Positions 725 to 22,442 of a stretch of DNA of 23,156 nucleotides are shown here, piece after piece. The translations under genes were made by a program, and so were the position numbers. The DNA comes from Paramicrosporidium saccamoebae KSL3 (lineage: Eukaryota > Fungi > Cryptomycota). Position 1 is the stretch's first letter. Every line of letters begins with the position of its first letter. The DNA is taken from NCBI GenBank assembly GCA_002794465.1, contig MTSL01000213.1, positions 90,257-113,412 of the forward strand, given 5' to 3'. The notes under the pieces are model-generated. The model had not been told where the DNA came from. It did not search any database and was given only the letters and a program-made list of their open reading frames with translations.

Positions 725-835
725 AATCAATAATAAACCTGTATGTTGATATGAGTGTTGCGTGGTGAGAATATGACCACAGTGTCAATTCAAGTGGGCG
801 ACTGAGGACTGTTCATGTTAAACAACTGCATGTCA

Positions 836-945
836 TTGGTGAATCCGACCCTGATAGCGGCTCTGCAGTCCGATTTGGTCACATTAAGAATCGCTACCTA
901 TAAAGAAGCCACATACTTTAACAAAAGTGAGCTCACCCCTCAACA
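836..945 (+). repeat. Dispersed repeat module A, copy 1
   Basis: Reverse complement aligns by eye to 9972-10084 at roughly 80% identity and to 4046-4156. Confidence 0.9.
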
Positions 946-955
946 ATTTATTACT

Positions 956-997
956 AGTTGGTATGGATTCCCCCGCATAGCCTTGGAGAGTCGGCAT
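956..997 (-). repeat. Dispersed repeat module C, copy 1
   Basis: Reverse complement CGACTCTCCAA...CTATGCGGGGGAATCCATACCAACT matches 22397-22442. Confidence 0.7.
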
Positions 998-1078
998 TTC
1001 CTCTCCTCGCCTCGGACTCTTTTATGTGTTTGATCCACCATACTTTATACGGGTAGGCCCCGTTGGGATACCCTTGTC

Positions 1079-2602
1079 ATGACTTGGAGTAGGAAGAGAA
1101 AGGCTGTTTCATCCGCTGCAAAGGTTGAAGAGTTACTCACAAACAACATGCAGGAGAGTGTCCAGCTACCCGACCTACTCTCCACCAAGCTTTCAAGCGG
1201 CCAGCGTGATGAGCAGATGCAAGCCTGCGCTTTGCTGGCTTCCCTGGAGATGGAAAGTCTGCTAGGAAAGAGTGATATTCTACCCAGGCTGCTGGGCTGT
1301 ATTAATGGTGGGGATGCAGTGGTGGCGGCAGAGGCTGCTTCAGTGCTGCGGATATGGAGTAGCGGGAATGCCAGACTGCTCTACGCCCACTGTGTGCTGC
1401 CACGGATGATTCAGCTCCTCCCTGCCTGTCTAACCACGTTGGAGCGCATCTCAGAGCTAGAAAAGAGTGATGTGCAGGTTTTTGAACATTTCCTAGTATC
1501 TCTGCTGCTTGTCATCTGGTCTTTTGTGGAGGAAGTCCCAGCTGCCATTAATCAGATCAACGACAGCCCCGTCGTGTCCCTCAGCTGCCTGATACTGGAG
1601 AGGGCTTCATTTTTGGAGGAAGAGACGATTGTGGTAATGTTGCAGCTGTTACTCTGCGCAAGTGAAGAAAATCAGGAAAAGCTCTACGCAAATGCCGCCG
1701 ACAGAGTACGGCTCGAGGCTTTGCTTCAGAGAAGGACTGGTAATCTAGACTGTCATTCTGCCATTCTTTCCTTTGGTCTACTGAGTGTCATCTCCTCAGA
1801 ATGCACTTGTGAAAATGTTCTTCAGCTATTTTCAGTTGTGGAACGAGAAGTGTCGTTGGAGATGCTGCGCGATCTCTTGGAAATGTTGACAAATTTTATT
1901 TCTGAAGTGGAATTTGAGAGTTTCCAGGATCATTTTGCCAATATTCTATTGGCCAAACTGGCAGCTAATCCTGAGGCTACTGAAGTAATGAACAGGGGAC
2001 AGGGCTGCCTGATGAATTTGATTCTAGCCCAGCCTGCAGCACTAAGTGTGGAAGCTAAGCAGAACATCTGGACATGGGCACTTTGCGAAGCGCTCCCAAC
2101 TGCAGCCAGCGCAGTGAGTGCGATAGACCCGACAAATCCCGCCAGTGCGATTAATGCCGCAAATACAACGAGCACTCTCGCAGGTACATGCGAACTATTG
2201 AGGAATCTGCTGCTCTGCAGTCTTGGCGAGCATGAACTAAAGTATACGATGGAGGATATCGGACGCCTGCAGCAAATCTGCAATGCAAACATTGCCAATG
2301 ATTCCATAGTTGCAAATCTCGCGTCAATTCCTGCAATTCTATGCAAAGAAATTGATGTACCATGGCTTTATTCGACAGTCTACTCACTATTTGACAAGAG
2401 CAGGCCGCTAAGGACAATTTTGGCGGTTGCTGAGATAATTGAAGAATTGACAAACCGCGATGCGATTGAGACTAGTCTGCGAAACGTTCTAAAGTCGAGA
2501 CGGCCCTCGGTAATTGAGAGCTGCGCGAGTGAAATGGCTACCGCTGGGAACGACGAGTTTGACTATATTGTGTCCGTATTAGACGCGGCCCTTAACGACT
2601 AA
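1079..2602 (+). CDS. ARM/HEAT-repeat protein, probably Syo1/HEATR3-like (uL5/uL18 import adaptor)
   Basis: 507-aa intronless ORF; basic N-terminus MTWSRKRK followed by a leucine-rich helical repeat body, an architecture resembling Syo1/HEATR3. Family assignment from recall only. Confidence 0.55.
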   Translation: MTWSRKRKAVSSAAKVEELLTNNMQESVQLPDLLSTKLSSGQRDEQMQACALLASLEMESLLGKSDILPRLLGCINGGDAVVAAEAASVLRIWSSGNARLLYAHCVLPRMIQLLPACLTTLERISELEKSDVQVFEHFLVSLLLVIWSFVEEVPAAINQINDSPVVSLSCLILERASFLEEETIVVMLQLLLCASEENQEKLYANAADRVRLEALLQRRTGNLDCHSAILSFGLLSVISSECTCENVLQLFSVVEREVSLEMLRDLLEMLTNFISEVEFESFQDHFANILLAKLAANPEATEVMNRGQGCLMNLILAQPAALSVEAKQNIWTWALCEALPTAASAVSAIDPTNPASAINAANTTSTLAGTCELLRNLLLCSLGEHELKYTMEDIGRLQQICNANIANDSIVANLASIPAILCKEIDVPWLYSTVYSLFDKSRPLRTILAVAEIIEELTNRDAIETSLRNVLKSRRPSVIESCASEMATAGNDEFDYIVSVLDAALND

Positions 2603-2641
2603 TAAAACTATTGCATCAGGCACGGTGGGTAAATTGCCGCT

Positions 2642-2650
2642 CTGATTGGT
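2642..2650. promoter_or_regulatory. Reverse CCAAT box (NF-Y/HAP site) upstream of the CRAL-TRIO gene
   Basis: TCTGATTGGT at 2641-2650; the identical 10-mer occurs at 21087-21096 in another promoter. Confidence 0.5.
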
Positions 2651-2665
2651 CAATGGCCATTCTGC

Positions 2666-3946
2666 ATGGACATTCCTTGTGAGGTCAGTGTACCGCTACC
2701 TGGCACGGGTAGTCCAGAGGAGCCTGTAGTTGAAATGGAGAGTGTGGACACGCCGCCGATAAAGACGAGGAGGTCTAGTTCCGGTCCGGGATGTTTACAT
2801 ACGATAAATGACAAGCAGAAATCAACTCTATTTCTACTTTGGAACATGCTGGATGCCTATTTTAGACATCCCTACATTAAAGTCTCTGGGGAGAAGCTTG
2901 CCGAGCTTGGTCAAAGTTTCCTCGAAACTGGCAATGTGGGTGGGAAAGCAGCAGCAAGTGAACATCCTCTTTATTTGGAGCTGTACCGGTTTGCCGCCAG
3001 CGATGACCTTGACACAACTCTGCTTCGTTTCCTTCGTGCCCGTAAATGGAATGTTATCACCGCATTCACTGCCATTGTGGAGTGTCTAATATGGCGTCAT
3101 GAGTTTGGCGTTGATGCATTAATGCGTGCTGGCGAATCGCGGATAGACCAAGGCTCGCTGGAATCGGGCAAAGGTTTTGTGTGGGGCGAGGACCGGGACG
3201 GCCGTCTCGTTGTCTACATGCGCGGCCGTCTCCATGACAAAAACGCCCAAACATTGGAGGAAAGCATTGACTATGCGGTCCACTTTCTGGAGATGGCTCG
3301 ATCTTTGAGGAGACACGATGAACAGCTGCTGACTGTTGTGATTGACATGCAAGGAGCAGGATTAGCCTCCTTTGACCTGCCATTGGCACAGGCTATGGGC
3401 AGATTTGTGCAGGGATGCTACCCCGAGGTGATGGGTGTCTGTTTGGTGATGAATGCGCCGTGGATATTTTGGGGATTCTGGAGCATAGTAAAGAATCTGC
3501 TTGATCCTGTAATTGTCGCTAAATTTGCGTTCATCAAGCCGGCAGAGCTAGTCGATTACATAGATCCGGCACAGACTCCGGTGGACTTTGGCGGACGGTC
3601 TTCATTCAGATACCATTACTTTCCTGATCCAAAGCCTGTGCGCGCCCAGATAGACGAGATGGCATTGACAGCCCTGTATCGGAAGGGGAAAACCTTTGCA
3701 GAATTAAACAGACAGATCCACACGAACTGGGACCCCTCCATTGTGAGAAGTCGCAATCTGGTCAAGGCCGAGCTTCGGATAGGCTATTATCTGTTGATGA
3801 AGCCAGTCTATCCACAGACAATCTATCATCGCTGGGGGATCTGTCGGGAGGATGGGTCAATGGATTGGTCATTGTATAAGGGACCGGCAAAGAGGCATCT
3901 CCATCTGGGTGAACTGGAACAATTGCGTTCCTCTGCCCCGCCTTGA
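2666..3946 (+). CDS. CRAL-TRIO (Sec14-like) lipid-binding protein, Csr1-like
   Basis: DTTLLRFLRARKWNV (CRAL-TRIO N), WRHEFGV, G.D.DGRLVVY, FVQGCYPEVMG.CLVMNAPWIFWGFWSIVKNLLDPVIVAKF. Confidence 0.92.
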   Translation: MDIPCEVSVPLPGTGSPEEPVVEMESVDTPPIKTRRSSSGPGCLHTINDKQKSTLFLLWNMLDAYFRHPYIKVSGEKLAELGQSFLETGNVGGKAAASEHPLYLELYRFAASDDLDTTLLRFLRARKWNVITAFTAIVECLIWRHEFGVDALMRAGESRIDQGSLESGKGFVWGEDRDGRLVVYMRGRLHDKNAQTLEESIDYAVHFLEMARSLRRHDEQLLTVVIDMQGAGLASFDLPLAQAMGRFVQGCYPEVMGVCLVMNAPWIFWGFWSIVKNLLDPVIVAKFAFIKPAELVDYIDPAQTPVDFGGRSSFRYHYFPDPKPVRAQIDEMALTALYRKGKTFAELNRQIHTNWDPSIVRSRNLVKAELRIGYYLLMKPVYPQTIYHRWGICREDGSMDWSLYKGPAKRHLHLGELEQLRSSAPP

Positions 3947-4045
3947 ATTGCAATCAATATGCTCTTGACTTTGAGAGAGCACATCCACTGGCCATAGATA
4001 AGGGAGACATTGTAGGAGAATAGTTTGATTGATTGGAGATGATGG

Positions 4046-4397
4046 GTTTGTTGAAGAGCGAGCTTACTTTTATAAAAGTATATGGCATATAGACAGCCAT
4101 CCTTAATCTAACCGGAATGGCGTGCAGGATCGCTATCTGGGTCAGACTCGCCAATATTAAGTGTGTGACGTAGAGATAGAGGTAGAGGCAGAGGATTGAC
4201 TAGTTGGGTATATGTCGTAGAGAGTTGATTAGTTGCTGGGTATTTGAGGACAGTGAGGTGTGTATCCATACTATTCTAGGATTAGCAGTAAACAAATCCC
4301 CTCCTTTCCGCCTAAACTGGGCCGTGGTATCCTCTCCCCCACTGCGCGACAAAGGAGCCATACACTTTAATAAAAGTGTGTTCACCCATCAACAAAG
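4046..4397. mobile_element. Putative MITE-like non-autonomous element (modules A+B) bounded by about 40-bp imperfect inverted repeats
   Basis: 4046-4086 TTTGTTGAAGAGCGAGCTTACTTTTATAAAAGTATATGGC vs reverse complement of about 4357-4397 TTTGTTGATGGGTGAACACACTTTTATTAAAGTGTATGGC. The interior has copies elsewhere in the window. No clear target-site duplication. Confidence 0.5.
4225..4313 (+). repeat. Dispersed repeat module B, copy 1
   Basis: 89-bp direct repeat with 8060-8148 (about 8 mismatches), preceded in both copies by TGTGACGTAG and AGAGGY hexamers. Confidence 0.95.
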
Positions 4398-4568
4398 TCT
4401 TTACTACAAACACCAAACTCACAGCAGGTACAAGGCTATGCAACAGTTGACTAGGAATTTTGCAAAGCTTTGCGGCGGGATCGCCCAGCACGGGGTAATT
4501 AGTTGGCAATAAGCGTCTTTATTAGTTCAGATAACATAGACTTGACCACCTTGCGGCAGCAGCAGCGT

Positions 4569-6296
4569 TCAACTTTTCTGAGAATTATATTTTGATTCGT
4601 CCATAGAAAAATCTTCTGCATCGGAAACCTCGAGACTATTAAATGCTGATATCGGTACAAAGGTCTTGTCAACCAAACTGGCCATCTCATCTGGAGTAAA
4701 GAATGTTGAAATCTGCATTGTATTCAACATGCGTTGAATAGACGCACAAAGCTGATTATCAACCGAGTTAGTGACTTTTGCCGCAATACGGCTTGCAAAT
4801 CCGTCCCACGTCTCCAACTCATCTCCATCTTTAAAGAAGAAGGAAAAGTTCCCTTTTCTGTTGCAGAGGATTAAAAATGGCCAGGAAGCAATAGCTAGGT
4901 GAATTGACCCGTGTTTGTCGTCACAACTTTCTGACCATTCAGACGCAAATTTCACCAGCCATGTGCCAAACCACTCTGTTTCTCCAGACCAGTCAACAAA
5001 ATTATGATTGATTGGCAAGTTTTGTCCCTCTTGAAGACAATCTTCAATGAATATATTCATCGCTCTTTGGCGCTCATGGTGCGACGTCAGAAGCTGTACC
5101 GTCATCGGAATTCGGGGGAAAATGCCACTACTCCACCAAGAATTGATTCTGTGCTCCAATGGTACCAATATCCTGGGGAGAAAAGGACGTTTAAAGTGAC
5201 GAAAGTCAGTCACAAGCCAGTGTTGTTGATCGGTCCCCACATAAAGCTGGCCAATTTTTCGAATGGCAAAAGGCAGCACTAACTCTTCGGGAGCATTCTT
5301 TAGGAAGCGAGATACGAGTCTTTCGCATTCATACATTCCGATCTCATAGTCAGGACAAATACTGACAATGTTGGCCAAGGTTCCCCATATAGCTCTCTTT
5401 TCCGATATGAGAGCCGTTTGTTCCAGCGTTTCATAAACTTCTAAATGAGACTCTCTGCTTAGTGTGTCACCTTCCAGGCCCCTTATGAAGTTCCCCGCCA
5501 TGGCCGCGTCCTCTGACTCAAGATTTCCGAGGACCTCTTGAAAGATTATTGTTCCTGACATATTCAAACGGAACTCATTCACAGTCAAGGCAGCTGTAAC
5601 GGTTCGATAAAATAGTTCGTCCGGGGAAAGCCCATCAGGGCTTAAAAAGGACTTTAGAAAGATGTCTTCATCTAACGATCCCTCGAAAAGGAACAGCTGC
5701 AATAGTTCAGGAAACATTTCAGGGATAAGGAGATTATAAACGTCGACCACATCATCTAATGGGCAGTTTCTAGTAAGCCCTTGAAACAGATCCAACGACT
5801 CTAGGGAAGAAAACTGATGCTCAATGAGATAGCAAATCATGGCCTTCAGTGTTTCGCAATCTCTAAATAAAGGAGCTGAGTGCTTATGATGCCCGGATAT
5901 GTCTCCAACAAGGCTTGGAGTGTAGGGACACTTTTTTTCCACAAAAATGTACCGCGCATAGGGAGGCGTAGTAAGAAGCTTGTCTAGAGGGAAGAACTTT
6001 GGTTGCATTTTCGGATCTGTTGATAGTGGAAGCATATTCTGTATCCGTATGTAGTCCTCATAGAGCTTGTTGTAGATACTATCAAAGCCTAGCCTTTCGT
6101 TAGACAAGAGGTACTCCACGCTCGCCAGCGTATCCTGTTGTATCTCAAATGTATCAAATATAGTCGATATGACATCAGTGCCTACGCTAATTGCTAGTTG
6201 TGAAGGTGCAAGTTGAAGCTGAAGAGCCAAAGTCCACCCCAGAAGCCAAACCAAACGTAGCATCATCTGTATCCCCATATACCCCGGCTCCAACAT
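4569..6296 (-). CDS. Orphan protein with predicted signal peptide (likely start at ATG 6266)
   Basis: 575-aa intronless ORF; hydrophobic MMLRLVWLLGWTLALQL segment; no family recognised. Confidence 0.8.
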   Translation of the reverse strand: MLEPGYMGIQMMLRLVWLLGWTLALQLQLAPSQLAISVGTDVISTIFDTFEIQQDTLASVEYLLSNERLGFDSIYNKLYEDYIRIQNMLPLSTDPKMQPKFFPLDKLLTTPPYARYIFVEKKCPYTPSLVGDISGHHKHSAPLFRDCETLKAMICYLIEHQFSSLESLDLFQGLTRNCPLDDVVDVYNLLIPEMFPELLQLFLFEGSLDEDIFLKSFLSPDGLSPDELFYRTVTAALTVNEFRLNMSGTIIFQEVLGNLESEDAAMAGNFIRGLEGDTLSRESHLEVYETLEQTALISEKRAIWGTLANIVSICPDYEIGMYECERLVSRFLKNAPEELVLPFAIRKIGQLYVGTDQQHWLVTDFRHFKRPFLPRILVPLEHRINSWWSSGIFPRIPMTVQLLTSHHERQRAMNIFIEDCLQEGQNLPINHNFVDWSGETEWFGTWLVKFASEWSESCDDKHGSIHLAIASWPFLILCNRKGNFSFFFKDGDELETWDGFASRIAAKVTNSVDNQLCASIQRMLNTMQISTFFTPDEMASLVDKTFVPISAFNSLEVSDAEDFSMDESKYNSQKS

Positions 6297-6447
6297 GGCT
6301 GGAGGACATGCCGGAGTGATAGAGATTAAAAATTATAAAGATAGTAGACTATATTTCCTTCAGTTGACGCAATTCTGGTGCCCGATATAGCGCCAAGGAT
6401 CATGCAGGGCAACTGGATTTTAAAGAATATTATTTAACACTGGTCGT

Positions 6448-7939
6448 ATGAATAACGTTCGCAATTTTCTTCGCCCATTGCTCACTGTATCTCTCTCCAG
6501 GCGTCTGACCTTTTAGAATGGCAGCCGGCTTGCCAGTAGTGTTGCTGGTGTACCACTAACAGCAAATGCAACTGTTCTTAGTGGAGTCACCAGTGCCTTT
6601 CGTCCTACCCTCACAAAAGTCACTACTTTGAGCAACGGAATGAGGGTCGCATCTGAAAACTTGGAGGGTGAGACAGCAACAGTTGGGATTTGGATAGACG
6701 CCGGGAGTCGCTACGAGGACGAGTCGAATAACGGGACCGCTCACTTTCTAGAGCATATGGCCTTTAAAGTATGCCTCCCATCTAGTTAACCTTGGGTAGG
6801 GAACCAAGAGACGCACTCAGACCGACTTGGAGCTGGAAGTGGAAAATATGGGGGGACACTTGAATGCCTATACGTCCCGGGAACAGACGGCATATTTTGC
6901 CAAAGTGTTCAAAAAGGATATTCCAAAGGCAGTGGATATATTGTCGGATATTTTACAAAACTCCACTCTCGACGAGAGAAACATTGAAAGGGAGCGTGAT
7001 GTGATTCTGCGAGAGCAGGAGGAGGTTGAAAAGCAAATGGAAGAGGTTGTATTCGACCATCTTCATGCGACGGCATTCCAAGGAAGTGCATTGGGACGTA
7101 CCATTTTGGGAACTGAACGTAACATTCGAACAATCTCCAAGCGAGATTTACAAAATTACATCCGCTTCAACTACACTGGACCACGCATGGTGCTGGCAGC
7201 TGCCGGTGGAGTTGATCATGATGAGCTGGTGAAGCTCGCTGAGAGAGCCTTTGCAGGTCTCCCCGCTGGCCCCAGTGTTTGGCGTCCTGAACCGGCTTCG
7301 TATACCGGAAGCGAAGTGCGGATGCGTGATGACACCATGAGCCATGCTCACATGGTTATTTCTGTACAGGGAGCGAGCTGGACAAGCCCAGATTATTTTC
7401 CTCTGTTGGTCGCCCAGGCCATTGTGGGGTCCTGGAATCGAGGGCTGGCCGGTGGCCACAATCTCGGCTCCAAACTTGCCCAGGTAGTTGCAAAGAATGA
7501 TTTAGCCCAAAGCTTCACCTCCTTCAACACCTCCTACTCAGACACTGGACTCTTTGGCATTTACATGGTTAGCGATCATGTCTATGATCTGGATGATCTT
7601 GCCTATGAGGTTCAGCAGGAGTGGGTGCGCATCTGTTTAAATGCAACTGAAGGTGAAGTGGCTCGTGCCAAGGCCCAATTGAAGGCCAGTCTCCTCTTGT
7701 CTTTGGATGGCACCACCCATATTTGCGAAGATATCGGCCGCCAACTTTTAACCTATGGAAAGCGCTACTCGTGGCAAGATATCCACCGCATGGTGGATGC
7801 GGTCGATGCGGCCACTGTCCGCCGTGTAGCTTCCGAGTATCTTTACGATCGCGATCCGGCAGTTGTAGCCCTTGGCCCTATTGGCAGCTTCCCTGATTAT
7901 AATCGCATCCGTGCTGCCACTCTCTGGCTGCGAAACTGA
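6448..7939 (+). CDS. MAS1: Mitochondrial processing peptidase beta subunit; exons 6448-6486, 6517-6768, 6800-7939
   Basis: Spliced N-terminus [20 protein letters not shown] (targeting-peptide-like), [26 protein letters not shown] (HxxEH), [29 protein letters not shown] introns of 30 and 31 nt restore the frame. Confidence 0.97.
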
Positions 7940-8059
7940 GTAATCACAATAAAGTTATTTATGAACTGTGTGTGAGATTTATTGGAAGAGAGAGGACTCG
8001 GCAGTTGTGACCAATTTGTGATCGAATTGTGACGTAGTGGCAGAGGCAGAGGCAGGGGG

Positions 8060-8148
8060 TTGATTAGTTGCTGGGTATTTGAGGACAGTGAAATGTGTAT
8101 CCATACTATTCTAGGATTAGCAGTGAATAAACCCCCCCTTTCCCGCCT
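8060..8148 (+). repeat. Dispersed repeat module B, copy 2
   Basis: About 90% identical to 4225-4313. Confidence 0.95.
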
Positions 8149-8552
8149 GACGGTCCATACTATTTATCCCCACTACGCAACGGAATTAAGGCATTTGTCA
8201 GGTCGACTGATCCTAACAACGAGATCAAAGCGATCGTCTTGTTATTCGTTTAGATAATGAATCATATCACATTGGAGAGCTTACAACCGGTAATAACAGT
8301 GGCTAATTTGGTGGTGGTTCCTCTACTATGCGACATGCGGATCAACAATTTCTAGTAAAGGACCACTACCGCAGACCTCACAACTGTCGATTCACGCATT
8401 TTGGTGGACTTCTGGGTACCATATATGCCGACTCTCACTATTCTATTGAAATGTTTGGTGTAGTACACTATTTGCAAGAGAGTAGCCAAGACTTGTTCAA
8501 CTGTATCTACCACTTTACAGCCCCCGCACTATTAAATTTCTTATTCGTGCAA

Positions 8553-8821
8553 ATGTCCGACCCCGAGCCTCGCAAGCTGTGTGTTGATGAGCAGCAGCGC
8601 TTCATTGATTGCATGTTTATCAATAGCAAATGTCTCCAATCCGGCCGCTTGTCATTTGAAGAATGCCTAGCAGAAGATGAAGGGAGCTCAATCATGCGTA
8701 ACGAGTGCCGTAATCTCTATTCTATGTACCTTCGATGCCGCGCTCAGATTGTACATTATTGATGGTGGCGCTAACTTTTATTTAGTGTGACACGAGGACG
8801 CGCTTTCGTGGATATCGCTGA
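8553..8821 (+). CDS. PET191: Cytochrome c oxidase assembly factor Pet191/COA5; exons 8553-8750, 8786-8821
   Basis: Cysteine pattern C..C..C..C..C..C of the Pet191 type; 35-nt intron GTACAT...GCTAAC...TTTAG joins to CDTRTRFRGYR*, matching the family's D.R.RFRG tail. Confidence 0.85.
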
Positions 8822-9043
8822 CTTTTCTTCCAGCCGCTCTAATAGTTTCTGCAAAATTAGGCCACAGCAACTACAAACCTGGCGTGCCATGGCATAATCG
8901 TTCTTTGTAAATCCCAGGGGCACTCTGCCTTTACTGAGTTCATAAAGGCTCGCCACTTCTTCCTCCCAAACAACCTGTTTCTCGAGATATAATTGCTTCA
9001 TACGCTCGAGCCTCTCCATTCGGTAATCGTCAGAACCAATCAT
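8771..9043 (-). CDS. Small hypothetical helical protein (start ATG 9043 or 9019)
   Basis: Open frame with protein-like composition (MERLERMKQLYLEKQVVWEEEVASLYELSKGR...) filling the gap between PET191 and FIT. No family recognised; 3' end overlaps PET191. Confidence 0.45.
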   Translation of the reverse strand: MIGSDDYRMERLERMKQLYLEKQVVWEEEVASLYELSKGRVPLGFTKNDYAMARQVCSCCGLILQKLLERLEEKSAISTKARPRVTLNKS

Positions 9044-9083
9044 CGCATTCGGCACATTGGCAGAGTCTAATTATTGGTTCTCA

Positions 9084-9926
9084 ATGGGCAGAACTAAACG
9101 GCGCTCCCCTTCTTTGCCCTCTACGGCCATTCCCACAGCCCAAGAAGAACATCCTGAGCTCAAACCGCCAGGGGCAGCATTTATGTCTTTGAGAGGAAGT
9201 GCGCTGCGCGTACTCCTTACTGCCGTTTTATTCGGTCTCATTGTGGTTGGCGACAAGTGGGGACGCCATGGAGACGATTTTGCTGAGGACCACCCAGCAG
9301 GAATATTCCTTGGAGTGCTGAACGAGATATTCAAAAAGACTGGCTGGCTACTGACAGCATCCTGCTGGGCATTACTCTTGTTTGCTCGGTATAATCGACA
9401 AATCAGACTACAAGAAAATGCTAGCTGGAGGAGGCATGCCGTAGTGGACACATTACTCTGGATTCTGGGAAGCATTTATTGGATGGCCATAGTTCATGTC
9501 GTCTTCAAGCGGGTGGCGCTTAATGTTGGAGATTGTGTTCTCCCAGGGAGCGACATTGTGCATGCTGAAATTACCTCGGCAGATTGTGCAAAACTAACAG
9601 GCAAATGGGTACCCTTTGACATTTCCGGACACGCATTCCTTGGGTCGTTGGGTATTAGCATACTGCTGGAAGAAATTATTCGCTTCATTGGAGAGCCTGT
9701 CTACTATTTCACGTTTTACTCTGCGGATGAATCAGTAAATCGAGCAAAGCTTTTCTGGAGGGTGGCAGTCATATTTGCAGCCTGCCTGGTTTCTATTTGG
9801 CTAACTCTGTTTACCAGAACCGCCCTCTATTATCATACATTTCAGGAAAAGATTTGGGGGACTATCGTTGGCCTCTCGTACTGGTGGACCGTTGTCATAG
9901 TTAGACTATTTATTCTGTACATATAA
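9084..9926 (+). CDS. FIT family (SCS3/FIT2) acyl-CoA diphosphatase
   Basis: FDISGHAFL and TALYYHTFQEKIWG motifs, multiple TM segments; first ATG at 9084. Confidence 0.93.
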   Translation: MGRTKRRSPSLPSTAIPTAQEEHPELKPPGAAFMSLRGSALRVLLTAVLFGLIVVGDKWGRHGDDFAEDHPAGIFLGVLNEIFKKTGWLLTASCWALLLFARYNRQIRLQENASWRRHAVVDTLLWILGSIYWMAIVHVVFKRVALNVGDCVLPGSDIVHAEITSADCAKLTGKWVPFDISGHAFLGSLGISILLEEIIRFIGEPVYYFTFYSADESVNRAKLFWRVAVIFAACLVSIWLTLFTRTALYYHTFQEKIWGTIVGLSYWWTVVIVRLFILYI

Positions 9927-9963
9927 TACATAACTGCAAGAGAGCATCTTCATGGATCAGGGA

Positions 9964-10107
9964 TAAAGAGCCTGTTGATGGGTGAAGCTCACTTTTATTA
10001 AAGTATGCGGCTTCTTTATAGGTAGCCATTCTTAATATAACCGAACTGGCCTGCGGGGCCACTATCTGGGTCAGACCCACCACTAATAAGTGGATGCTGT
10101 TTGACAG
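9964..10107 (-). repeat. Dispersed repeat module A, copy 3
   Basis: Matches 4046-4156 (direct), 836-945 and 4351-4403 (inverted). Confidence 0.9.
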
Positions 10108-10294
10108 AGCCTATTTTAATAGAGTATAGCATATCCTATAATATCATGTCACAGATTAAGGCTCTAACAAAGAGTCGGCTGCAATCACAAACCTCACAAA
10201 TGAAATCTCTCTTAAGAGGCCCTCATTATCCCTTTTAATCCAATCCCATAGAATTCGGTAATGGCTAGGCTAGAAAAGGAAAGAACCCAGACCA

Positions 10295-10605
10295 GGGTCT
10301 TCACTAAACAGCTCAAGCGGGGACGAACAAGCCGAGTCGTTCTATGGGCAGGCGACTCGGTCAGGTTGGCCGCTAGAGGAAAGTCTGGCGTAAAATCGTT
10401 GCATCATCTCTTTGACACTTTATCCCCATGGTGTTGCAACGACCTGCCGCCAAGGACATAATTATTTAAAACAAAACTAAAATCCAGTTGGTAGCGCAAC
10501 GTTGTGCTGCATAGTGCAATACAATACTACAAGCCGAGAGAGTAGCCGGTCATTAGGCTCCTTGGACCGAGAGATTCTAGCAGACGTCGGCTTTTAGTAA
10601 GAGTC
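10295..10605 (+). ncRNA. Probable RNase P or RNase MRP RNA
   Basis: P1 10298-10308/10593-10602; P3 with internal loop (AGCGG/CCGCT and CCGAGTCG/CGACTCGG); CR-I GAGGAAAGTCTGGCG 10376-10390; CR-IV AGTGCAAT 10513-10520; P19-like CGGTC/GACCG; CR-V-like CAGACGTCGGCTT pairing with CR-I with the bulged U of P4; TTTT run at 10611-10614. Confidence 0.75.
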
Positions 10606-10617
10606 TCGACTTTTAGT

Positions 10618-10778
10618 CTCAAATAGAATTTACCTACAACTTCTGCCTCGAATAGAATTTACCTACAACTTCTGCCTCGAATAGAATTTACCTACAACTT
10701 CTGCCTCAAATAGGATTTACCTACAACTTCTGCCTCAAATAGGATTTACCTACAACTTCTGCCTCAAATAGAATTTAC
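10618..10778. repeat. 29-bp tandem repeat, about 5.5 copies (AATAGRATTTACCTACAACTTCTGCCTCR)
   Basis: Units start at 10622, 10651, 10680, 10709 and 10738, partial unit at 10767; no spacers. Confidence 0.98.
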
Positions 10779-11854
10779 TTATAGGTCGTCAATATGGCTT
10801 GAGTGTGAGATGGCAGGATGGATGCATGAGATACGTCCATCCCTTCAAAAATCTGGTGGCATCCGAAACAAAAAGGCCTGCCCTCGTTGGGAGGCAATGG
10901 TGCCATGCAGAGTGCACAAGGTTTCAGGTCCTCCAGCCGAGATATGCAGGTCTCAATTTTGGCAGTGGTACGAACCACAGTGCTGACGGTAGCCGAATTT
11001 TCCAAATCAAGCCCGGTTATAAAATTGTCTGTAAGGCCGTAGATAGAGTCAGCCTTTGTCATGGTTGACTGCCGAGGCATAGGACATTGATTCTTGATGG
11101 AATCAAGGTAAAAGTTTACTTCCAGATTGACCAAATCCCGCAGTGGGCGAATAACTGAAACATCTGAATATGCTTGAGCAAGAGAATACTTCCATGGAAG
11201 GGACACCCCTCTTCCAGTGCAAGTATCTGCCATGATATCGACTGCTAGTCGACTGCAATTTTCGCCAACATATACCTTGCCAATGCCGCGTTGTTGGGCA
11301 ATCCGGACTAGTGCAACTCGAGTCAAAATGCGCACCAAATCGACACGCAGAGTATCACTTTCACAGGCATCCAAGAGCTGCTGCAGTCTCTCAGGCTCAC
11401 CATTATACAGACAATCGGCGAGAGTGTAGCTTTCAATAGCGACACCATAGCTATCAAAGACATTCTTGACAAACTCTGGTTTTTCTGCGGAATCGCCTCC
11501 TCTGGTTATGTGTACAAAATAGTAAGTGTCTAAATTTTTCCTGTTGGGGTCCTGGATACGGGCTTGTTGAGTAAGATGCAGCAATAAACTAAATCGTCTA
11601 GTGAAGCACAATTGACAATACTGACTGGATAATCCGCCTGAATAACCCACAAGGATACTCCCAGGACCCGAAGGATTCCTGGTCTGGTTCCTGTACTTGT
11701 GATACACTTGGTCCTGGAAGCATGCTCTATCGTTGAGTAATTTTGGATAACAATAGTACTCGCAATATACCGCATAACGAACATTTATCGTAAACGGTTT
11801 GGATTTGCATTTGATACACTGACCTGCTATAATAGGATTACCAGCAGAATCCAT
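10775..11854 (-). CDS. CTU2: Cytoplasmic tRNA 2-thiolation protein 2 (Ctu2/Ncs2); probable introns 11727-11759 and 11589-11621
   Basis: N-terminal CxxC...CxxC after splicing, degenerate PP-loop GYSGGLSS, GENCSRLA.DIM..TCTGRG, IRPLRDL...EV..Y, STVVRT..K, C-terminal CxxC pairs. Confidence 0.9.
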   Translation of the reverse strand: MDSAGNPIIAGQCIKCKSKPFTINVRYAVYCEYYCYPKLLNDRACFQDQVYHKYRNQTRNPSGPGSILVGYSGGLSSQYCQLCFTRRFSLLLHLTQQARIQDPNRKNLDTYYFVHITRGGDSAEKPEFVKNVFDSYGVAIESYTLADCLYNGEPERLQQLLDACESDTLRVDLVRILTRVALVRIAQQRGIGKVYVGENCSRLAVDIMADTCTGRGVSLPWKYSLAQAYSDVSVIRPLRDLVNLEVNFYLDSIKNQCPMPRQSTMTKADSIYGLTDNFITGLDLENSATVSTVVRTTAKIETCISRLEDLKPCALCMAPLPPNEGRPFCFGCHQIFEGMDVSHASILPSHTQAILTTYK

Positions 11855-15755: not shown

Positions 15756-15796
15756 ATTGAGGTTCTGAGTGGGTGGGGGGAGTTTTCGAGTAGAGG

Positions 15797-15892
15797 TCTC
15801 AGTCTCAGTCTCAATCTCAATCTCAGTCTCAGTCTCAATCTCAATCTCAGTTTCAGTCTCAGTCTCAATCTCAGTCTCCATCTCAGTCTCAG
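15797..15892. repeat. Hexamer microsatellite (TCTCAR)x16
   Basis: TCTCAG/TCTCAA units with two variant units (TTTCAG, TCTCCA), about 40 bp after the CAF-1 stop. Confidence 0.95.
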
Positions 15893-16108
15893 ACTTGACC
15901 TCAACACTCGTTTCAATACTTGTGTTAGATAGTATCTGCTTATGACTGGCAGTCCCAACGCAGATGGCTATCCCACAATCCAGTATGTTGATCTATAAAG
16001 GCACTACAATAAAACCAACTCGCTCTTCAAAGACTTAACATCAGAGATACTCTCCTCTCACACTTATCAACGCTAAGATAAAATCCCAATTATCTTAGTG
16101 TTGAGTTA

Positions 16109-17464: not shown

Positions 17465-18598
17465 TTATAATACAGTAGGAGTGATAGTCTTACTAACTGA
17501 GCGAGTGATAGGCTTCACCTTGTTATCAACAAGATTCTCAGAATTGCCAGGATCGGCAGATTTGGCCTTTTCAGTTGTGGACTTTCGAACAACTTTAAAG
17601 ATTTGATCAATCCTCCCGTCCTTCTTGGGAGTGACGGGAACTACAATTGGCTTCTTTGGAGCTGCTTTCGACATTTCCGCCAAGATATTGACCCAAGAGT
17701 CGCACTCTCCAACCAGTTCAAAATTAAAAATAGTCTTCCATTCACTCCTGGGGGCTGGAGTTTTGTTGATAAAAAGCACCAATCCATTGGGCTCTTGGCG
17801 AACACTCCGAGCCAAGTCTTTGATCATCTTTTTCAGACCAACAACTTTCAATGAAGTTCCCATGACAACTAGCACTGTGGGGCGTTTCGAAATGTCAAAT
17901 CCAACGTACTCTGCTATCACATCACCCTGGGGATGAGGTTCATTGTAGAGAACAATGTCCGGTCGAAGAATTCCGCCCTTGATTGCACGGCGTCCTAATG
18001 CCTGCCGCTCTTTGGAAAACGATTCACAACTAGGGCAGGATGGCGAATCCCCCTCTGAAAATGAAGTCTCGTGAGAACTGGTAAACTCTGTGGTAGCCTT
18101 GCAGGCTGAACAGATGAGACGATCTAGAGTGCCGTGAAGGGAAACTACAGGAACCTTTTTGGTAGAATGCAAATCCACACAACAAGTAGTCTGCAATCCC
18201 ATCGCCTTTTCTAATCCGTCAATATTTTGAGAGTACCAACGAGTCACTCTTCCTTCCTTGACAAGATTTGCAATAAAGGAATGGGTCGGAGTAGGGTTCC
18301 CCGACGAACATAGCCTGCGCAATTCGGCTACAAATCGATTGAATAGTGGCCGAGTGGCTGGGTTGTGAAAAAAGGATGCATCAAAAAAGTCTTTGCCCTT
18401 TGCAGTTTTGCTATCAGAGCCGGATAGAATGCGCGCGTACAGACCGTCTGCAGAACGAAAGTCTGGGATGCCAGCTGAAACGGAAATTCCTGCGCCGGTC
18501 ACAACCACAATTCTGCGTTGATTGTGAATAGCAAAGGCCACCTTTTCCAGCAACCCTTTGTTTTCGTCCACCTGGTCAAGGCTCAATGACACAACCAT
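17465..18598 (-). CDS. NAD-dependent sirtuin deacetylase, Hst3/Hst4 type
   Basis: TGAGISVSAGIPDFRS, YSQNIDGLE, LHGTL with CxxC...CxxC, LRPDIVLYNEPHP, VMGTSLKVVGLKKMIK (Hst3/4-like). First ATG at 18598. Confidence 0.92.
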   Translation of the reverse strand: MVVSLSLDQVDENKGLLEKVAFAIHNQRRIVVVTGAGISVSAGIPDFRSADGLYARILSGSDSKTAKGKDFFDASFFHNPATRPLFNRFVAELRRLCSSGNPTPTHSFIANLVKEGRVTRWYSQNIDGLEKAMGLQTTCCVDLHSTKKVPVVSLHGTLDRLICSACKATTEFTSSHETSFSEGDSPSCPSCESFSKERQALGRRAIKGGILRPDIVLYNEPHPQGDVIAEYVGFDISKRPTVLVVMGTSLKVVGLKKMIKDLARSVRQEPNGLVLFINKTPAPRSEWKTIFNFELVGECDSWVNILAEMSKAAPKKPIVVPVTPKKDGRIDQIFKVVRKSTTEKAKSADPGNSENLVDNKVKPITRSVSKTITPTVL

Positions 18599-18692
18599 AC
18601 CGATTGCTGGCCAGCTATGATAGCCCTTGTTTCCCACAAATGTAAAATCCGCCCCACGGACTGCGCAATTTGCAATTTTATTTCACTTGAAG

Positions 18693-19888
18693 TTAGAGAG
18701 AATACACGGATGTGGACTTTGCCTCTTCCTTTGAACTCAAGCTATGCTTTCTTAGTAGCTGGCATTCCCCGCCCTTTTCAAAATCAATGGAAAAAACTAA
18801 AAAGAACCCATCGGCCGTCACAACCATCACTTGAGGCACCACACTACATCTTATCAGTTCCACCTGATAGAATTACCTGCTGAGAGCACAGAGACTAGCG
18901 ACATTTCCGGTGGGGAGTTTCAGATGCGCGAAATCTCGGGTCGATTCCAGTGCCTCTCCTACTCGCTCTGGTAAAAAAGAGCTCATTAGATGGGATCCTG
19001 AAGGCGAGGAAGCAGCCAGCTTAAAGATGTGCACAGTATCAGAGTCGCTTGTTACGCAAAGCATGTTCGACTGCATGTTAAAGGAAAGACAGTGGATGGT
19101 GGCTGGATAGGTTCCTCGTCGCAGTTGATGCAGCTTCTGTCCATTAATGGCGTTAAAAACTCGCAATATTGTTCCTCTATCTGAGGCTGTAGCCAGCAAA
19201 GTCCCATCGATATTGAATGCGAGCTTGGACACTGGTGTGCGATGCGCCTGAATGACACACACGGGCTGCAAGGTGAGGGTATTGAAGACCTGAATAGATC
19301 CATCGTGTTCGCCAGATGGATAGGCTAAAAAGGGCGGATCTGCAGTAGGGGACATGGCACTGACTCCTACAAAGCAGCTTAGCTGTCAGTTGATTCTGGA
19401 ACTACCCGTGGGATTGGTCGCTGTTTCTATTGTGTGGATAATCTTCATGGTGCTCAGGTCGTAAATATGGATTTTCTCGTCAAGGACAACCACAAGACGC
19501 TTTCGATTCATGTGAACCGAAAGGACCTTGGTAGGGAAATTAAGCTCACAGACTACAGTCTGCCTCTTTGTGTTAATAACCTGGAGTTTCCGGGGAGAAA
19601 AAGTGGGAGGCTCGCCCGCACCCGCGATTGCCACTAAACTTGAGCTAAACAGCATCTCACATATTCCGGCTGCTCCATCCTCTACAACTATTATTACAAG
19701 CCGAAATGTTGCACCGCGTTCATAACACTTTCCAAATGGTTCACAATTGTAAATACGAAAACCCCGACGCGTCCCCACCGATAAACAACTACAACATGTA
19801 CAGTAATTATGGTTGAATACCTAAAGTCCTGATTAAAGTTTACATATAAAAGCTCCTGCTCTGGACCCGCTAGTACTCCACAATTCAT
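18693..19888 (-). CDS. ATG18: PROPPIN autophagy protein Atg18/WIPI; introns 19789-19820, 19682-19714, 19367-19405, 18844-18876
   Basis: Spliced [67 protein letters not shown] lipid-binding motif, final exon [11 protein letters not shown]. Confidence 0.95.
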
Positions 19889-22306: not shown

Positions 22307-22396
22307 AAGCTAAATAGAATTTTTAAGCATGTATCTGGTGTGAAGTGGTAGGATGTTTAGCTGGATGCTAGGTATTTATCTAATGGTTGAAAATAT

Positions 22397-22442
22397 CGAC
22401 TCTCCAATGTTTGGACACTATGCCGGCGAGTCCATACCAACT
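22397..22442 (+). repeat. Dispersed repeat module C, copy 2
   Basis: 11-bp exact block plus a 25-bp block with 3 mismatches against the reverse complement of 956-993. Confidence 0.7.

Follow-up and report, generated by a model that had tools for sequence, protein, structure and literature searches.

The long terminal repeats (LTRs) of Ty1/copia and Ty3/gypsy elements are characterized by TG...CA termini that lie in a short inverted repeat, and by a flanking duplication of 5 bp. Here we describe a family of short intergenic repeats from Paramicrosporidium saccamoebae KSL3 that is best compared with such sequences. It was found in a stretch of 23,156 nt from contig MTSL01000213.1 (assembly GCA_002794465.1, positions 90,257 to 113,412 of the forward strand), which we call the window; positions are counted from its first letter. 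A preliminary description, made from the letters of the window, had reported a conserved element of about 110–140 bp, called Module A, in five intergenic copies in both orientations. We show that Module A is the ~57-nt head and the ~70-nt tail of a family that exists in two forms, and not a free-standing unit. With moderate confidence, we read this family as the decayed relics of a non-autonomous mobile element specific to the P. saccamoebae lineage, probably solo LTRs.

P. saccamoebae belongs to the Rozellomycota and is an intranuclear parasite of amoebae. Its genome paper gives a genome of 7.3 Mb with 3750 genes, which is 76% genic and was described as nearly devoid of repeats. Repeats amount to 0.53% of the genome in that account, most of them simple, and transposable elements go unmentioned. 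The assembly was built from 80-nt reads. The open reading frames (ORFs) of the window are eukaryotic (Sec14/CRAL-TRIO, mitochondrial processing peptidase M16, PET191, FIT, CTU2, CAF1A, TFIIF-alpha, SIR2, PROPPIN and BRO1).

Repeat copies were recovered by self-BLASTN and with an nhmmer profile from 42.25 kb of the scaffold (window-equivalent -9944 to 32306), and all repeat counts given below hold for these 42 kb. Runs of N mark scaffold gaps at both edges of the window (-240 to 0 and 23157 to 23356, relative to the window), and a third gap lies at -6237 to -6131. More repeat copies could be hidden in these gaps. Our literature searches found no description of the repeat family.

Copies, forms and ends of the repeat family

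The copies are listed in Table 1 together with the other features of the region. Repetition of Module A in both orientations was borne out by both search methods, and four copies are robust, with pairwise E-values of 1e-8 to 1e-26 and profile E-values down to 1e-42. The copies at 816–945 and 9973–10106 share 80–84% identity across 110–134 nt (E 1e-24 to 1e-26), and the copy at 4049–4163 is 77% identical to 9973–10092 (E 7e-18). The partial inverted head was detected by nhmmer at 4347–4402 (E 3.7e-14). The fifth copy that had been counted, at 15934–16030, is marginal. The observation made in the preliminary description holds, with coordinates a few bases off the true ends. The perfect 16-bp palindrome reported at 4065–4080 (TACTTTTATAAAAGTA) is exact; it includes TATAAAAG and lies within the copy at 4049–4163. 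Further copies were absent from the 10.7 kb to the left of position 816 and from the 6 kb to the right of position 26136.

Table 1. Copies of the repeat family and other features in and near the window
Feature	Position	Strand	Remarks
Short-form copy, complete, 130 nt	816–945	-	Head TGTTGAGGGG begins at 945, tail ...TTTAACA stops at 816; nhmmer E 3.7e-40; spacer between adh_short and a 507-aa gene
C module	956–999	-	By the head of copy 816–945
Short-form copy without its last 12–14 nt	4049–4163	+	Abuts an inverted long copy at 4164
Long-form copy without tail	4164–4394	-	Head from 4394 down to ~4340; B 4350–4164
Orphan gene, 564 aa	4569–6263	-	Sec14–M16 interval; adjoins the composite repeat
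Diverged long-form copy	7950–8245	-	Fills the spacer from M16 to PET191; outer limits approximate
NCBI model at the FIT locus, 214 aa	8771–9563	-	Opposite strand to the FIT ORF
FIT ORF	9057–9926	+	Pfam domain E 7.6e-15
GAGCC, left half of 5-bp direct repeat (candidate target-site duplication)	9968–9972	+	Sequence and flank comparison
Short-form copy, complete, best preserved, 134 nt	9973–10106	+	TGTTGATGGG...CTGTTTGACA; 47 nt 3' of the FIT ORF stop
GAGCC, right half of 5-bp direct repeat	10107–10111	+	Sequence and flank comparison
Conserved block of ~190 nt	10262–10490	-	Spacer between FIT and CTU2
29-nt tandem array	10618–10778		5.6 copies, 96% matching
(GTCTCA)n array, 16 units	15796–15892		Adjoins the marginal Module A relic
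Possible very old short-form relic, marginal	15934–16030	-	nhmmer E 3e-4, ~50% identity
NCBI model, 639 aa	17465–19888	-	SIR2-domain and PROPPIN/WD40 ORFs
C module	22391–22442	+	Alone in the spacer between BRO1 and SPT16
Long-form copy, complete, 319 nt	window-equivalent 26136 to 25818	-	2.7 kb past the right end of the window

A second repeat, which we call B, occurs at 4164–4350 and 8028–8190 with 81–91% identity, and at 4164 it abuts Module A directly. The complete long copy to the right of the window contains both repeats in one piece, namely an A head (profile positions 2–57), a reverse-complemented B of ~200 nt and an A tail (positions 68–134). The long form of the family is therefore a unit of ~319 bp in which head and tail enclose an internal B segment of ~200 nt. 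In the short form of 130–134 bp, B is replaced by 16 nt (ATAGGTAGCSATTCTT), and head and tail are those of the long form. The junction between B and the head (CGCGAC/AAAGGAGCC) is common to the outside long copy and to 4164–4394, the junction between B and the tail (CTACGTCAC/AAT..GATCA.AATTGG) is common to the outside long copy and the copy at 8028, and the internal junction of the short form is identical in three short copies. Since the same internal junctions are found in at least three copies per form, each form was copied as a unit. Module A as a unit of 110–140 bp had hence been wrongly delimited: it comprises only the terminal parts shared by a ~320-bp element and a 130-bp derivative of it, and the repeat at 4164–4350 and 8028–8190 is the internal part of the longer unit, which the preliminary description missed.

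The B segment of the copy at 4164–4394 is 76–91% identical to the other two B copies, and the B core at 8028–8190 is likewise robust (BLASTN identity 81–91% with E 1e-26 to 1e-30; nhmmer E 7e-54). B holds sub-repeats of ~30 nt with GTGACGTAGAGG and TTGATTAGTTG motifs in variable number. Outside its B core, the diverged copy at 7950–8245 shows only ~20 nt of the tail-side junction and a weak head, with head and tail identities of 51–71%. Among the P. saccamoebae copies, identities in head and tail are 74–93%. The similarity is mosaic: the head of 816–945 is closest to the head of 9973–10106 (93% identity), and its tail finds its nearest match, at 89% identity, in the long copy, which fits recombination within the repeat family.

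The homology between the copies at 816–945 and 9973–10106 detected by BLASTN stops exactly at TGTTGA (945 and 9973) on one side and at ...ACA (816 and 10106) on the other. The element thus has the ends 5'-TGTTGA...TTTRACA-3', that is, TGT and ACA inside an imperfect inverted repeat of 6 bp. They read TGTTGA...TTTGACA in 9973–10106 and TGTTGA...TTTAACA in the inverted copy from 945 to 816, and both copies carry TG...CA termini like those of an LTR. The complete long copy ends in TGTTGA...TTTAACG, in which ACG is one transition off ACA, and the truncated heads at 4049 and 4394 also begin with TGTTGA. As for the check for target-site duplications suggested earlier, the 5-nt flanks match perfectly, as GAGCC, on both sides of 9973–10106, and at 3/5 and 2/5 positions around 816–945 and the third complete copy, respectively. 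In simulations with random flanks of the same region, at least 10 of 15 matching positions in total were obtained with P ~0.001, and at least one perfect match among three copies with P ~0.004; both values refer to three copies only. In addition, three copies have an RTAAAG motif at a fixed distance of 5 nt before TGTTGA, and in a fourth copy this distance is 1 nt. The motif may either reflect a preference for certain targets or belong to the element itself.

A small, non-coding, intergenic family with a long form and short deletion-derivative forms would also suit another class of non-autonomous mobile element, either a DNA-transposon deletion derivative resembling miniature inverted-repeat transposable elements (MITEs) or an unclassified element, for which the TGT/ACA ends would be incidental. 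B has imperfect inverted ends of its own of ~9 bp (GTGACGTAG...CTACGCGAC), and the composite at 4049–4394, located between Sec14 and the 564-aa gene, displays inverted heads of ~50 nt. However, these heads are best assigned to two truncated copies, a short one (+) standing tail to tail against a long one (-), and this placement makes the composite look like an inverted repeat of ~50 nt. The composite lacks a flanking duplication, and in the complete long copy head and tail have the same orientation; we therefore rejected 4049–4394 as a single foldback or MITE unit. Moreover, the terminal inverted repeat of single copies measures 3–6 bp (TGT, up to TGTTGA/TGTTAA) and not 10 bp or more, and the copies have no fold-back stability. 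Taken together, we consider a MITE-like or unclassified origin unlikely, though it is the strongest competitor of the solo LTRs.

Coding potential, placement and absence from relatives

The Module A copies have stops in all frames, and the substitutions between the two copies covered by ORFs fall at codon positions 1, 2 and 3 in numbers of 4, 9 and 4. The family is thus non-coding, as had been proposed. The preliminary description had also offered a multi-copy non-coding RNA as an explanation, and a set of genes for a small structured RNA would account for a size of ~130 nt, typical of small RNAs, and for the short conserved hairpins (ACTTT/AAAGT, and GGGT-CAG-ACCC with G-U-compatible variants). 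These hairpins are real features of the sequence. They do not receive support from covariation: in the RNAalifold consensus of the copies, the covariation term was +0.23 and 1 of 32 pairs was compensatory. We found no Rfam match for the element at E<=1, and ARAGORN predicted 0 tRNA genes and no tRNA-like fold. The lone Rfam match in the window was a sub-threshold CRISPR repeat inside a coding region (5625–5649), which we dismissed. Folding of the three full copies gave z-scores of -1.5, +1.3 and -1.35 for the element strand, and of -1.8, +0.5 and -2.65 for its complement. These values are mostly within 2 standard deviations of the shuffled sequences and favour neither strand consistently, and a stable fold-back as in MITEs is not seen. 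The long and the short form differ by 200 nt in the middle of the element, and the copies are absent in relatives, both of which also speak against RNA genes. We regard this explanation as very improbable. Nothing was found in favour of the structural chromosome element that had been considered as well.

The family makes up 1225 bp, or 2.9%, of the 42 kb. As had been noted, it occupies the long spacers: those bearing copies measure ~354–355, 623, 389 and 849 bp, and 488 bp outside the window, while the others are mostly 9–250 bp long. According to the gene tables of the 42 kb, 3 of 7 convergent spacers are occupied and hold four copies, compared with 2 of 14 tandem spacers and none of the 8 divergent (promoter-promoter) spacers. 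Copies are thus mostly found downstream of genes. Together with the conservation of the head, which is the best conserved part with up to 93% identity and holds TATA-like and AATAAA-like strings, and with the RTAAAG that precedes several copies, this placement could point to a functional cis-element, for example a module acting as a promoter or as a 3' end/terminator, which selection maintained after duplication or gene conversion had carried it from spacer to spacer. Yet in a convergent spacer either orientation puts the head beside a gene end, so that an apparent 3'-UTR (untranslated region) sense placement is uninformative. The copy at 816–945 is antisense to both of its neighbours, the copies are truncated and decaying, and most convergent spacers (26, 22, 152 and 177 bp) do without the element.

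By a protein search with Sec14 we found syntenic contigs of three uncultured relatives: L013 (JGI metagenome 3300042204; Sec14 86% identical in amino acids, coding DNA ~83% in nucleotides), L014 (Logan assembly; Sec14 53% identical) and L019 (JGI 3300037657, a contig of 173 kb; Sec14 49% identical). The fetched stretches of all three contained no match to A, B or the long form, and where the orthologous spacers between the same genes are readable, the element is absent. The spacer from adh_short to the next gene measures ~354–355 nt in P. saccamoebae, including the copy of 130 nt, and 169, 228 and 204 nt in the relatives. Similarly, the distance from the FIT stop to a conserved block downstream is 336 nt in P. 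saccamoebae and ~180 nt in L019, a difference near that of the 134-nt element plus 5 nt. In L019, Sec14 is directly followed by M16, without the composite repeat and without the 564-aa orphan gene. In view of these observations, a cis-element kept by selection appears quite improbable. The copies are 74–93% identical in head and tail and the spacers of the different species cannot be aligned, which indicates that the insertions post-date the split from these relatives.

Two local tandem duplications were seen in the orthologous spacers of the relatives. One, in L013 at 727–946, involves the 3' end of adh_short (~112 nt, 75% identity). In L019, a unit of 96 nt is duplicated in the M16/PET191 spacer at 10857–11066 with 97% identity.

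The search was extended to other collections. A metagenome scan with the head core ACTTTTRTWAAAGTRTRYGGC, in a collection without the P. saccamoebae assembly, gave 10 matches; as all of them were confined to the 21-mer according to nhmmer, they were set aside as chance matches. Patterns of the B core and the head yielded nothing, or chance matches to the pattern only, in bacterial and archaeal genomes and in IMG/VR.

Other features in and near the window

Next to the head of the copy at 816–945 lies a sequence of ~45 nt, the C module (AAAT..CGACTCTCCAA...CTATGC.GG.GA.TCCATACCAACT), which also occurs alone further to the right (Table 1). The local alignment of its two occurrences scored 24, whereas none of 1000 shuffles exceeded 18. 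The C module may belong to the Module A family as an additional piece, or to a different family.

Downstream of the copy at 9973–10106, the ~190-nt block in the FIT/CTU2 spacer is 76% identical to L019 12715–12945. The block has no conserved ORF, as it shows 1-nt indels and stops. RNAalifold on its minus strand gave a covariation term of -5.75 with 9 of 47 compensatory pairs, from two sequences only. The block is preceded by a conserved AAATAA and followed by a conserved CTTTTCTAG, and it has no Rfam match even at E<=10. We therefore put it forward as a candidate for an unannotated structured non-coding RNA gene. The 29-nt tandem array in the same region extends up to the stop codon of CTU2 and so lies immediately 3' of that gene. 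The (GTCTCA)n array falls inside an intron according to the NCBI model of a 589-aa TFIIF gene.

Several gene models deserve attention. The FIT (fat storage-inducing transmembrane) domain is encoded on the plus strand, as it is in L019, and the NCBI model places its protein on the other strand; the locus is hence probably mis-annotated. In the model at 17465–19888, a SIR2-domain ORF and PROPPIN/WD40 ORFs are fused into one protein, probably by a merge of gene models, and the opposite strand carries a flavoprotein gene model that overlaps it. The 564-aa orphan gene is missing at the syntenic position of L019, and among 1.8 billion representative proteins it has only ~20 distant homologues (21–27% identity). 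We considered it as a transposase and rejected this assignment: its N-terminus resembles a signal peptide, it has no Pfam domain, and its ~20 homologues are of similar length.

Interpretation and comparison with known elements

Of the explanations first proposed, an undescribed non-autonomous mobile element is the one favoured by our results. Occurrence in both orientations, sharp ends, two size classes with shared ends, truncated and inverted composites, mosaicism, avoidance of promoters and absence in relatives argue for a mobile family over a conserved functional element. That the copies multiplied by transposition is accordingly likely. The TGT...ACA ends, the imperfect inverted repeat of 6 bp and the 5-bp duplication on one copy favour solo LTRs, and we tentatively assign the family to the LTR class as the most probable one. 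Under the solo-LTR reading, an LTR retrotransposon would have been inserted by its integrase, and recombination between its LTRs would then have removed the interior and left solo LTRs. Possible counterparts of the internal promoter and poly(A) signals of an LTR (U3-R-U5 layout) are TATAAAAG in 4049–4163, TTATTAAAG in the other copies, and AATAAG near the 3' end of 9973–10106 only. The insertions, with the element facing either way, would have hit spacers of convergent or tandem gene pairs once the lineage had separated from its closest sampled relative, and the copies would later have decayed by substitutions, by truncation of their ends and by the formation of one inverted tail-to-tail composite. 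Such relics are probably without present function, apart from incidental TATA-like or poly(A)-like signals for neighbouring genes.

Several points weigh against solo LTRs. Within the 42 kb we saw neither a full-length element nor a reverse transcriptase, an integrase, a primer-binding site or a polypurine tract, and none of the annotated genes in them has a reverse transcriptase, integrase or gag domain; the lack of a retroelement partner there would equally suit the MITE-like alternative. Of the three complete copies, just one has a perfect flanking duplication. Since RTAAAG stands at a fixed offset, the true 5' boundary may lie upstream of TGTTGA, which would make the GAGCC repeat a coincidence, and the C module adjoins one head and recurs alone elsewhere. 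The spacers of L013 and L019 are too diverged for a clean alignment of empty sites, so that the comparison consists of spacer-length arithmetic only. Finally, the copy search covers 42 kb of one scaffold, and the 2.9% found there, against 0.53% genome-wide, suggests that the family is locally clustered, is low in copy number or was overlooked when repeats were analysed for the genome paper.

A more speculative variant, which we consider improbable, is that the family is a recently active miniature LTR-like element that inserts 5 nt downstream of an A-rich, poly(A)-signal-like ATAAAG at gene 3' ends, and that its copies might have acquired a second role, as insulators or 3'-end modules separating convergent genes. 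If this were true, ATAAAG-directed insertion would amount to 'safe-haven' targeting in a genome of 7.3 Mb that is 76% genic.

The repeat family is undescribed for the P. saccamoebae genome, and the kind of element is ordinary. If the mobile-element reading holds, mobile elements would have been active in a compacted lineage of the Rozellomycota since its split from the nearest sampled relative. A few insertions can set the length of spacers in compact genomes, and they appear to be tolerated mainly at gene 3' ends. The assembly, with its 80-nt reads and the gaps of N at both window edges, may under-report repeats. The results should help in annotating the genome and in studying genome compaction; they do not point to a new kind of biology.

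Among known small elements, short interspersed nuclear elements (SINEs) resemble the family in size, non-autonomy and dispersal. Unlike SINEs, the family has no head derived from tRNA, 5S or 7SL RNA (ARAGORN, Rfam), its 3' end (...TTTRACA) lacks an A-rich or simple-repeat tail, and its ends are sharply defined. MITEs are likewise small, non-coding and intergenic, form families of deletion derivatives and are tolerated near genes, whereas our copies have a terminal inverted repeat of 3–6 bp, no duplication of TA, TTA or 8–9 bp, and no fold-back stability. Terminal-repeat retrotransposons in miniature (TRIMs) also have very small LTR-like units of 100–300 bp without coding capacity; in contrast to them, no direct pair of copies surrounds a short interior with a primer-binding site and polypurine tract, and all copies are solitary or inverted. 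The closest likeness is to solo LTRs of Ty1/copia- or Ty3/gypsy-type retrotransposons, such as the delta and sigma elements of yeast. Points of difference are the lack of a full-length partner, of a primer-binding site and of a polypurine tract in the 42 kb, flanking duplications that are imperfect in two of the three complete copies, the absence of tRNA genes from the vicinity, and a conserved RTAAAG just outside the 5' end. The family shares with these solo LTRs a length of 130–320 bp, TG(T)...(A)CA ends in a short imperfect inverted repeat, a 5-bp flanking duplication on one copy, a TATA-like string near the 5' part, and copies that are scattered between genes in both orientations, vary in length and are in part truncated or nested.

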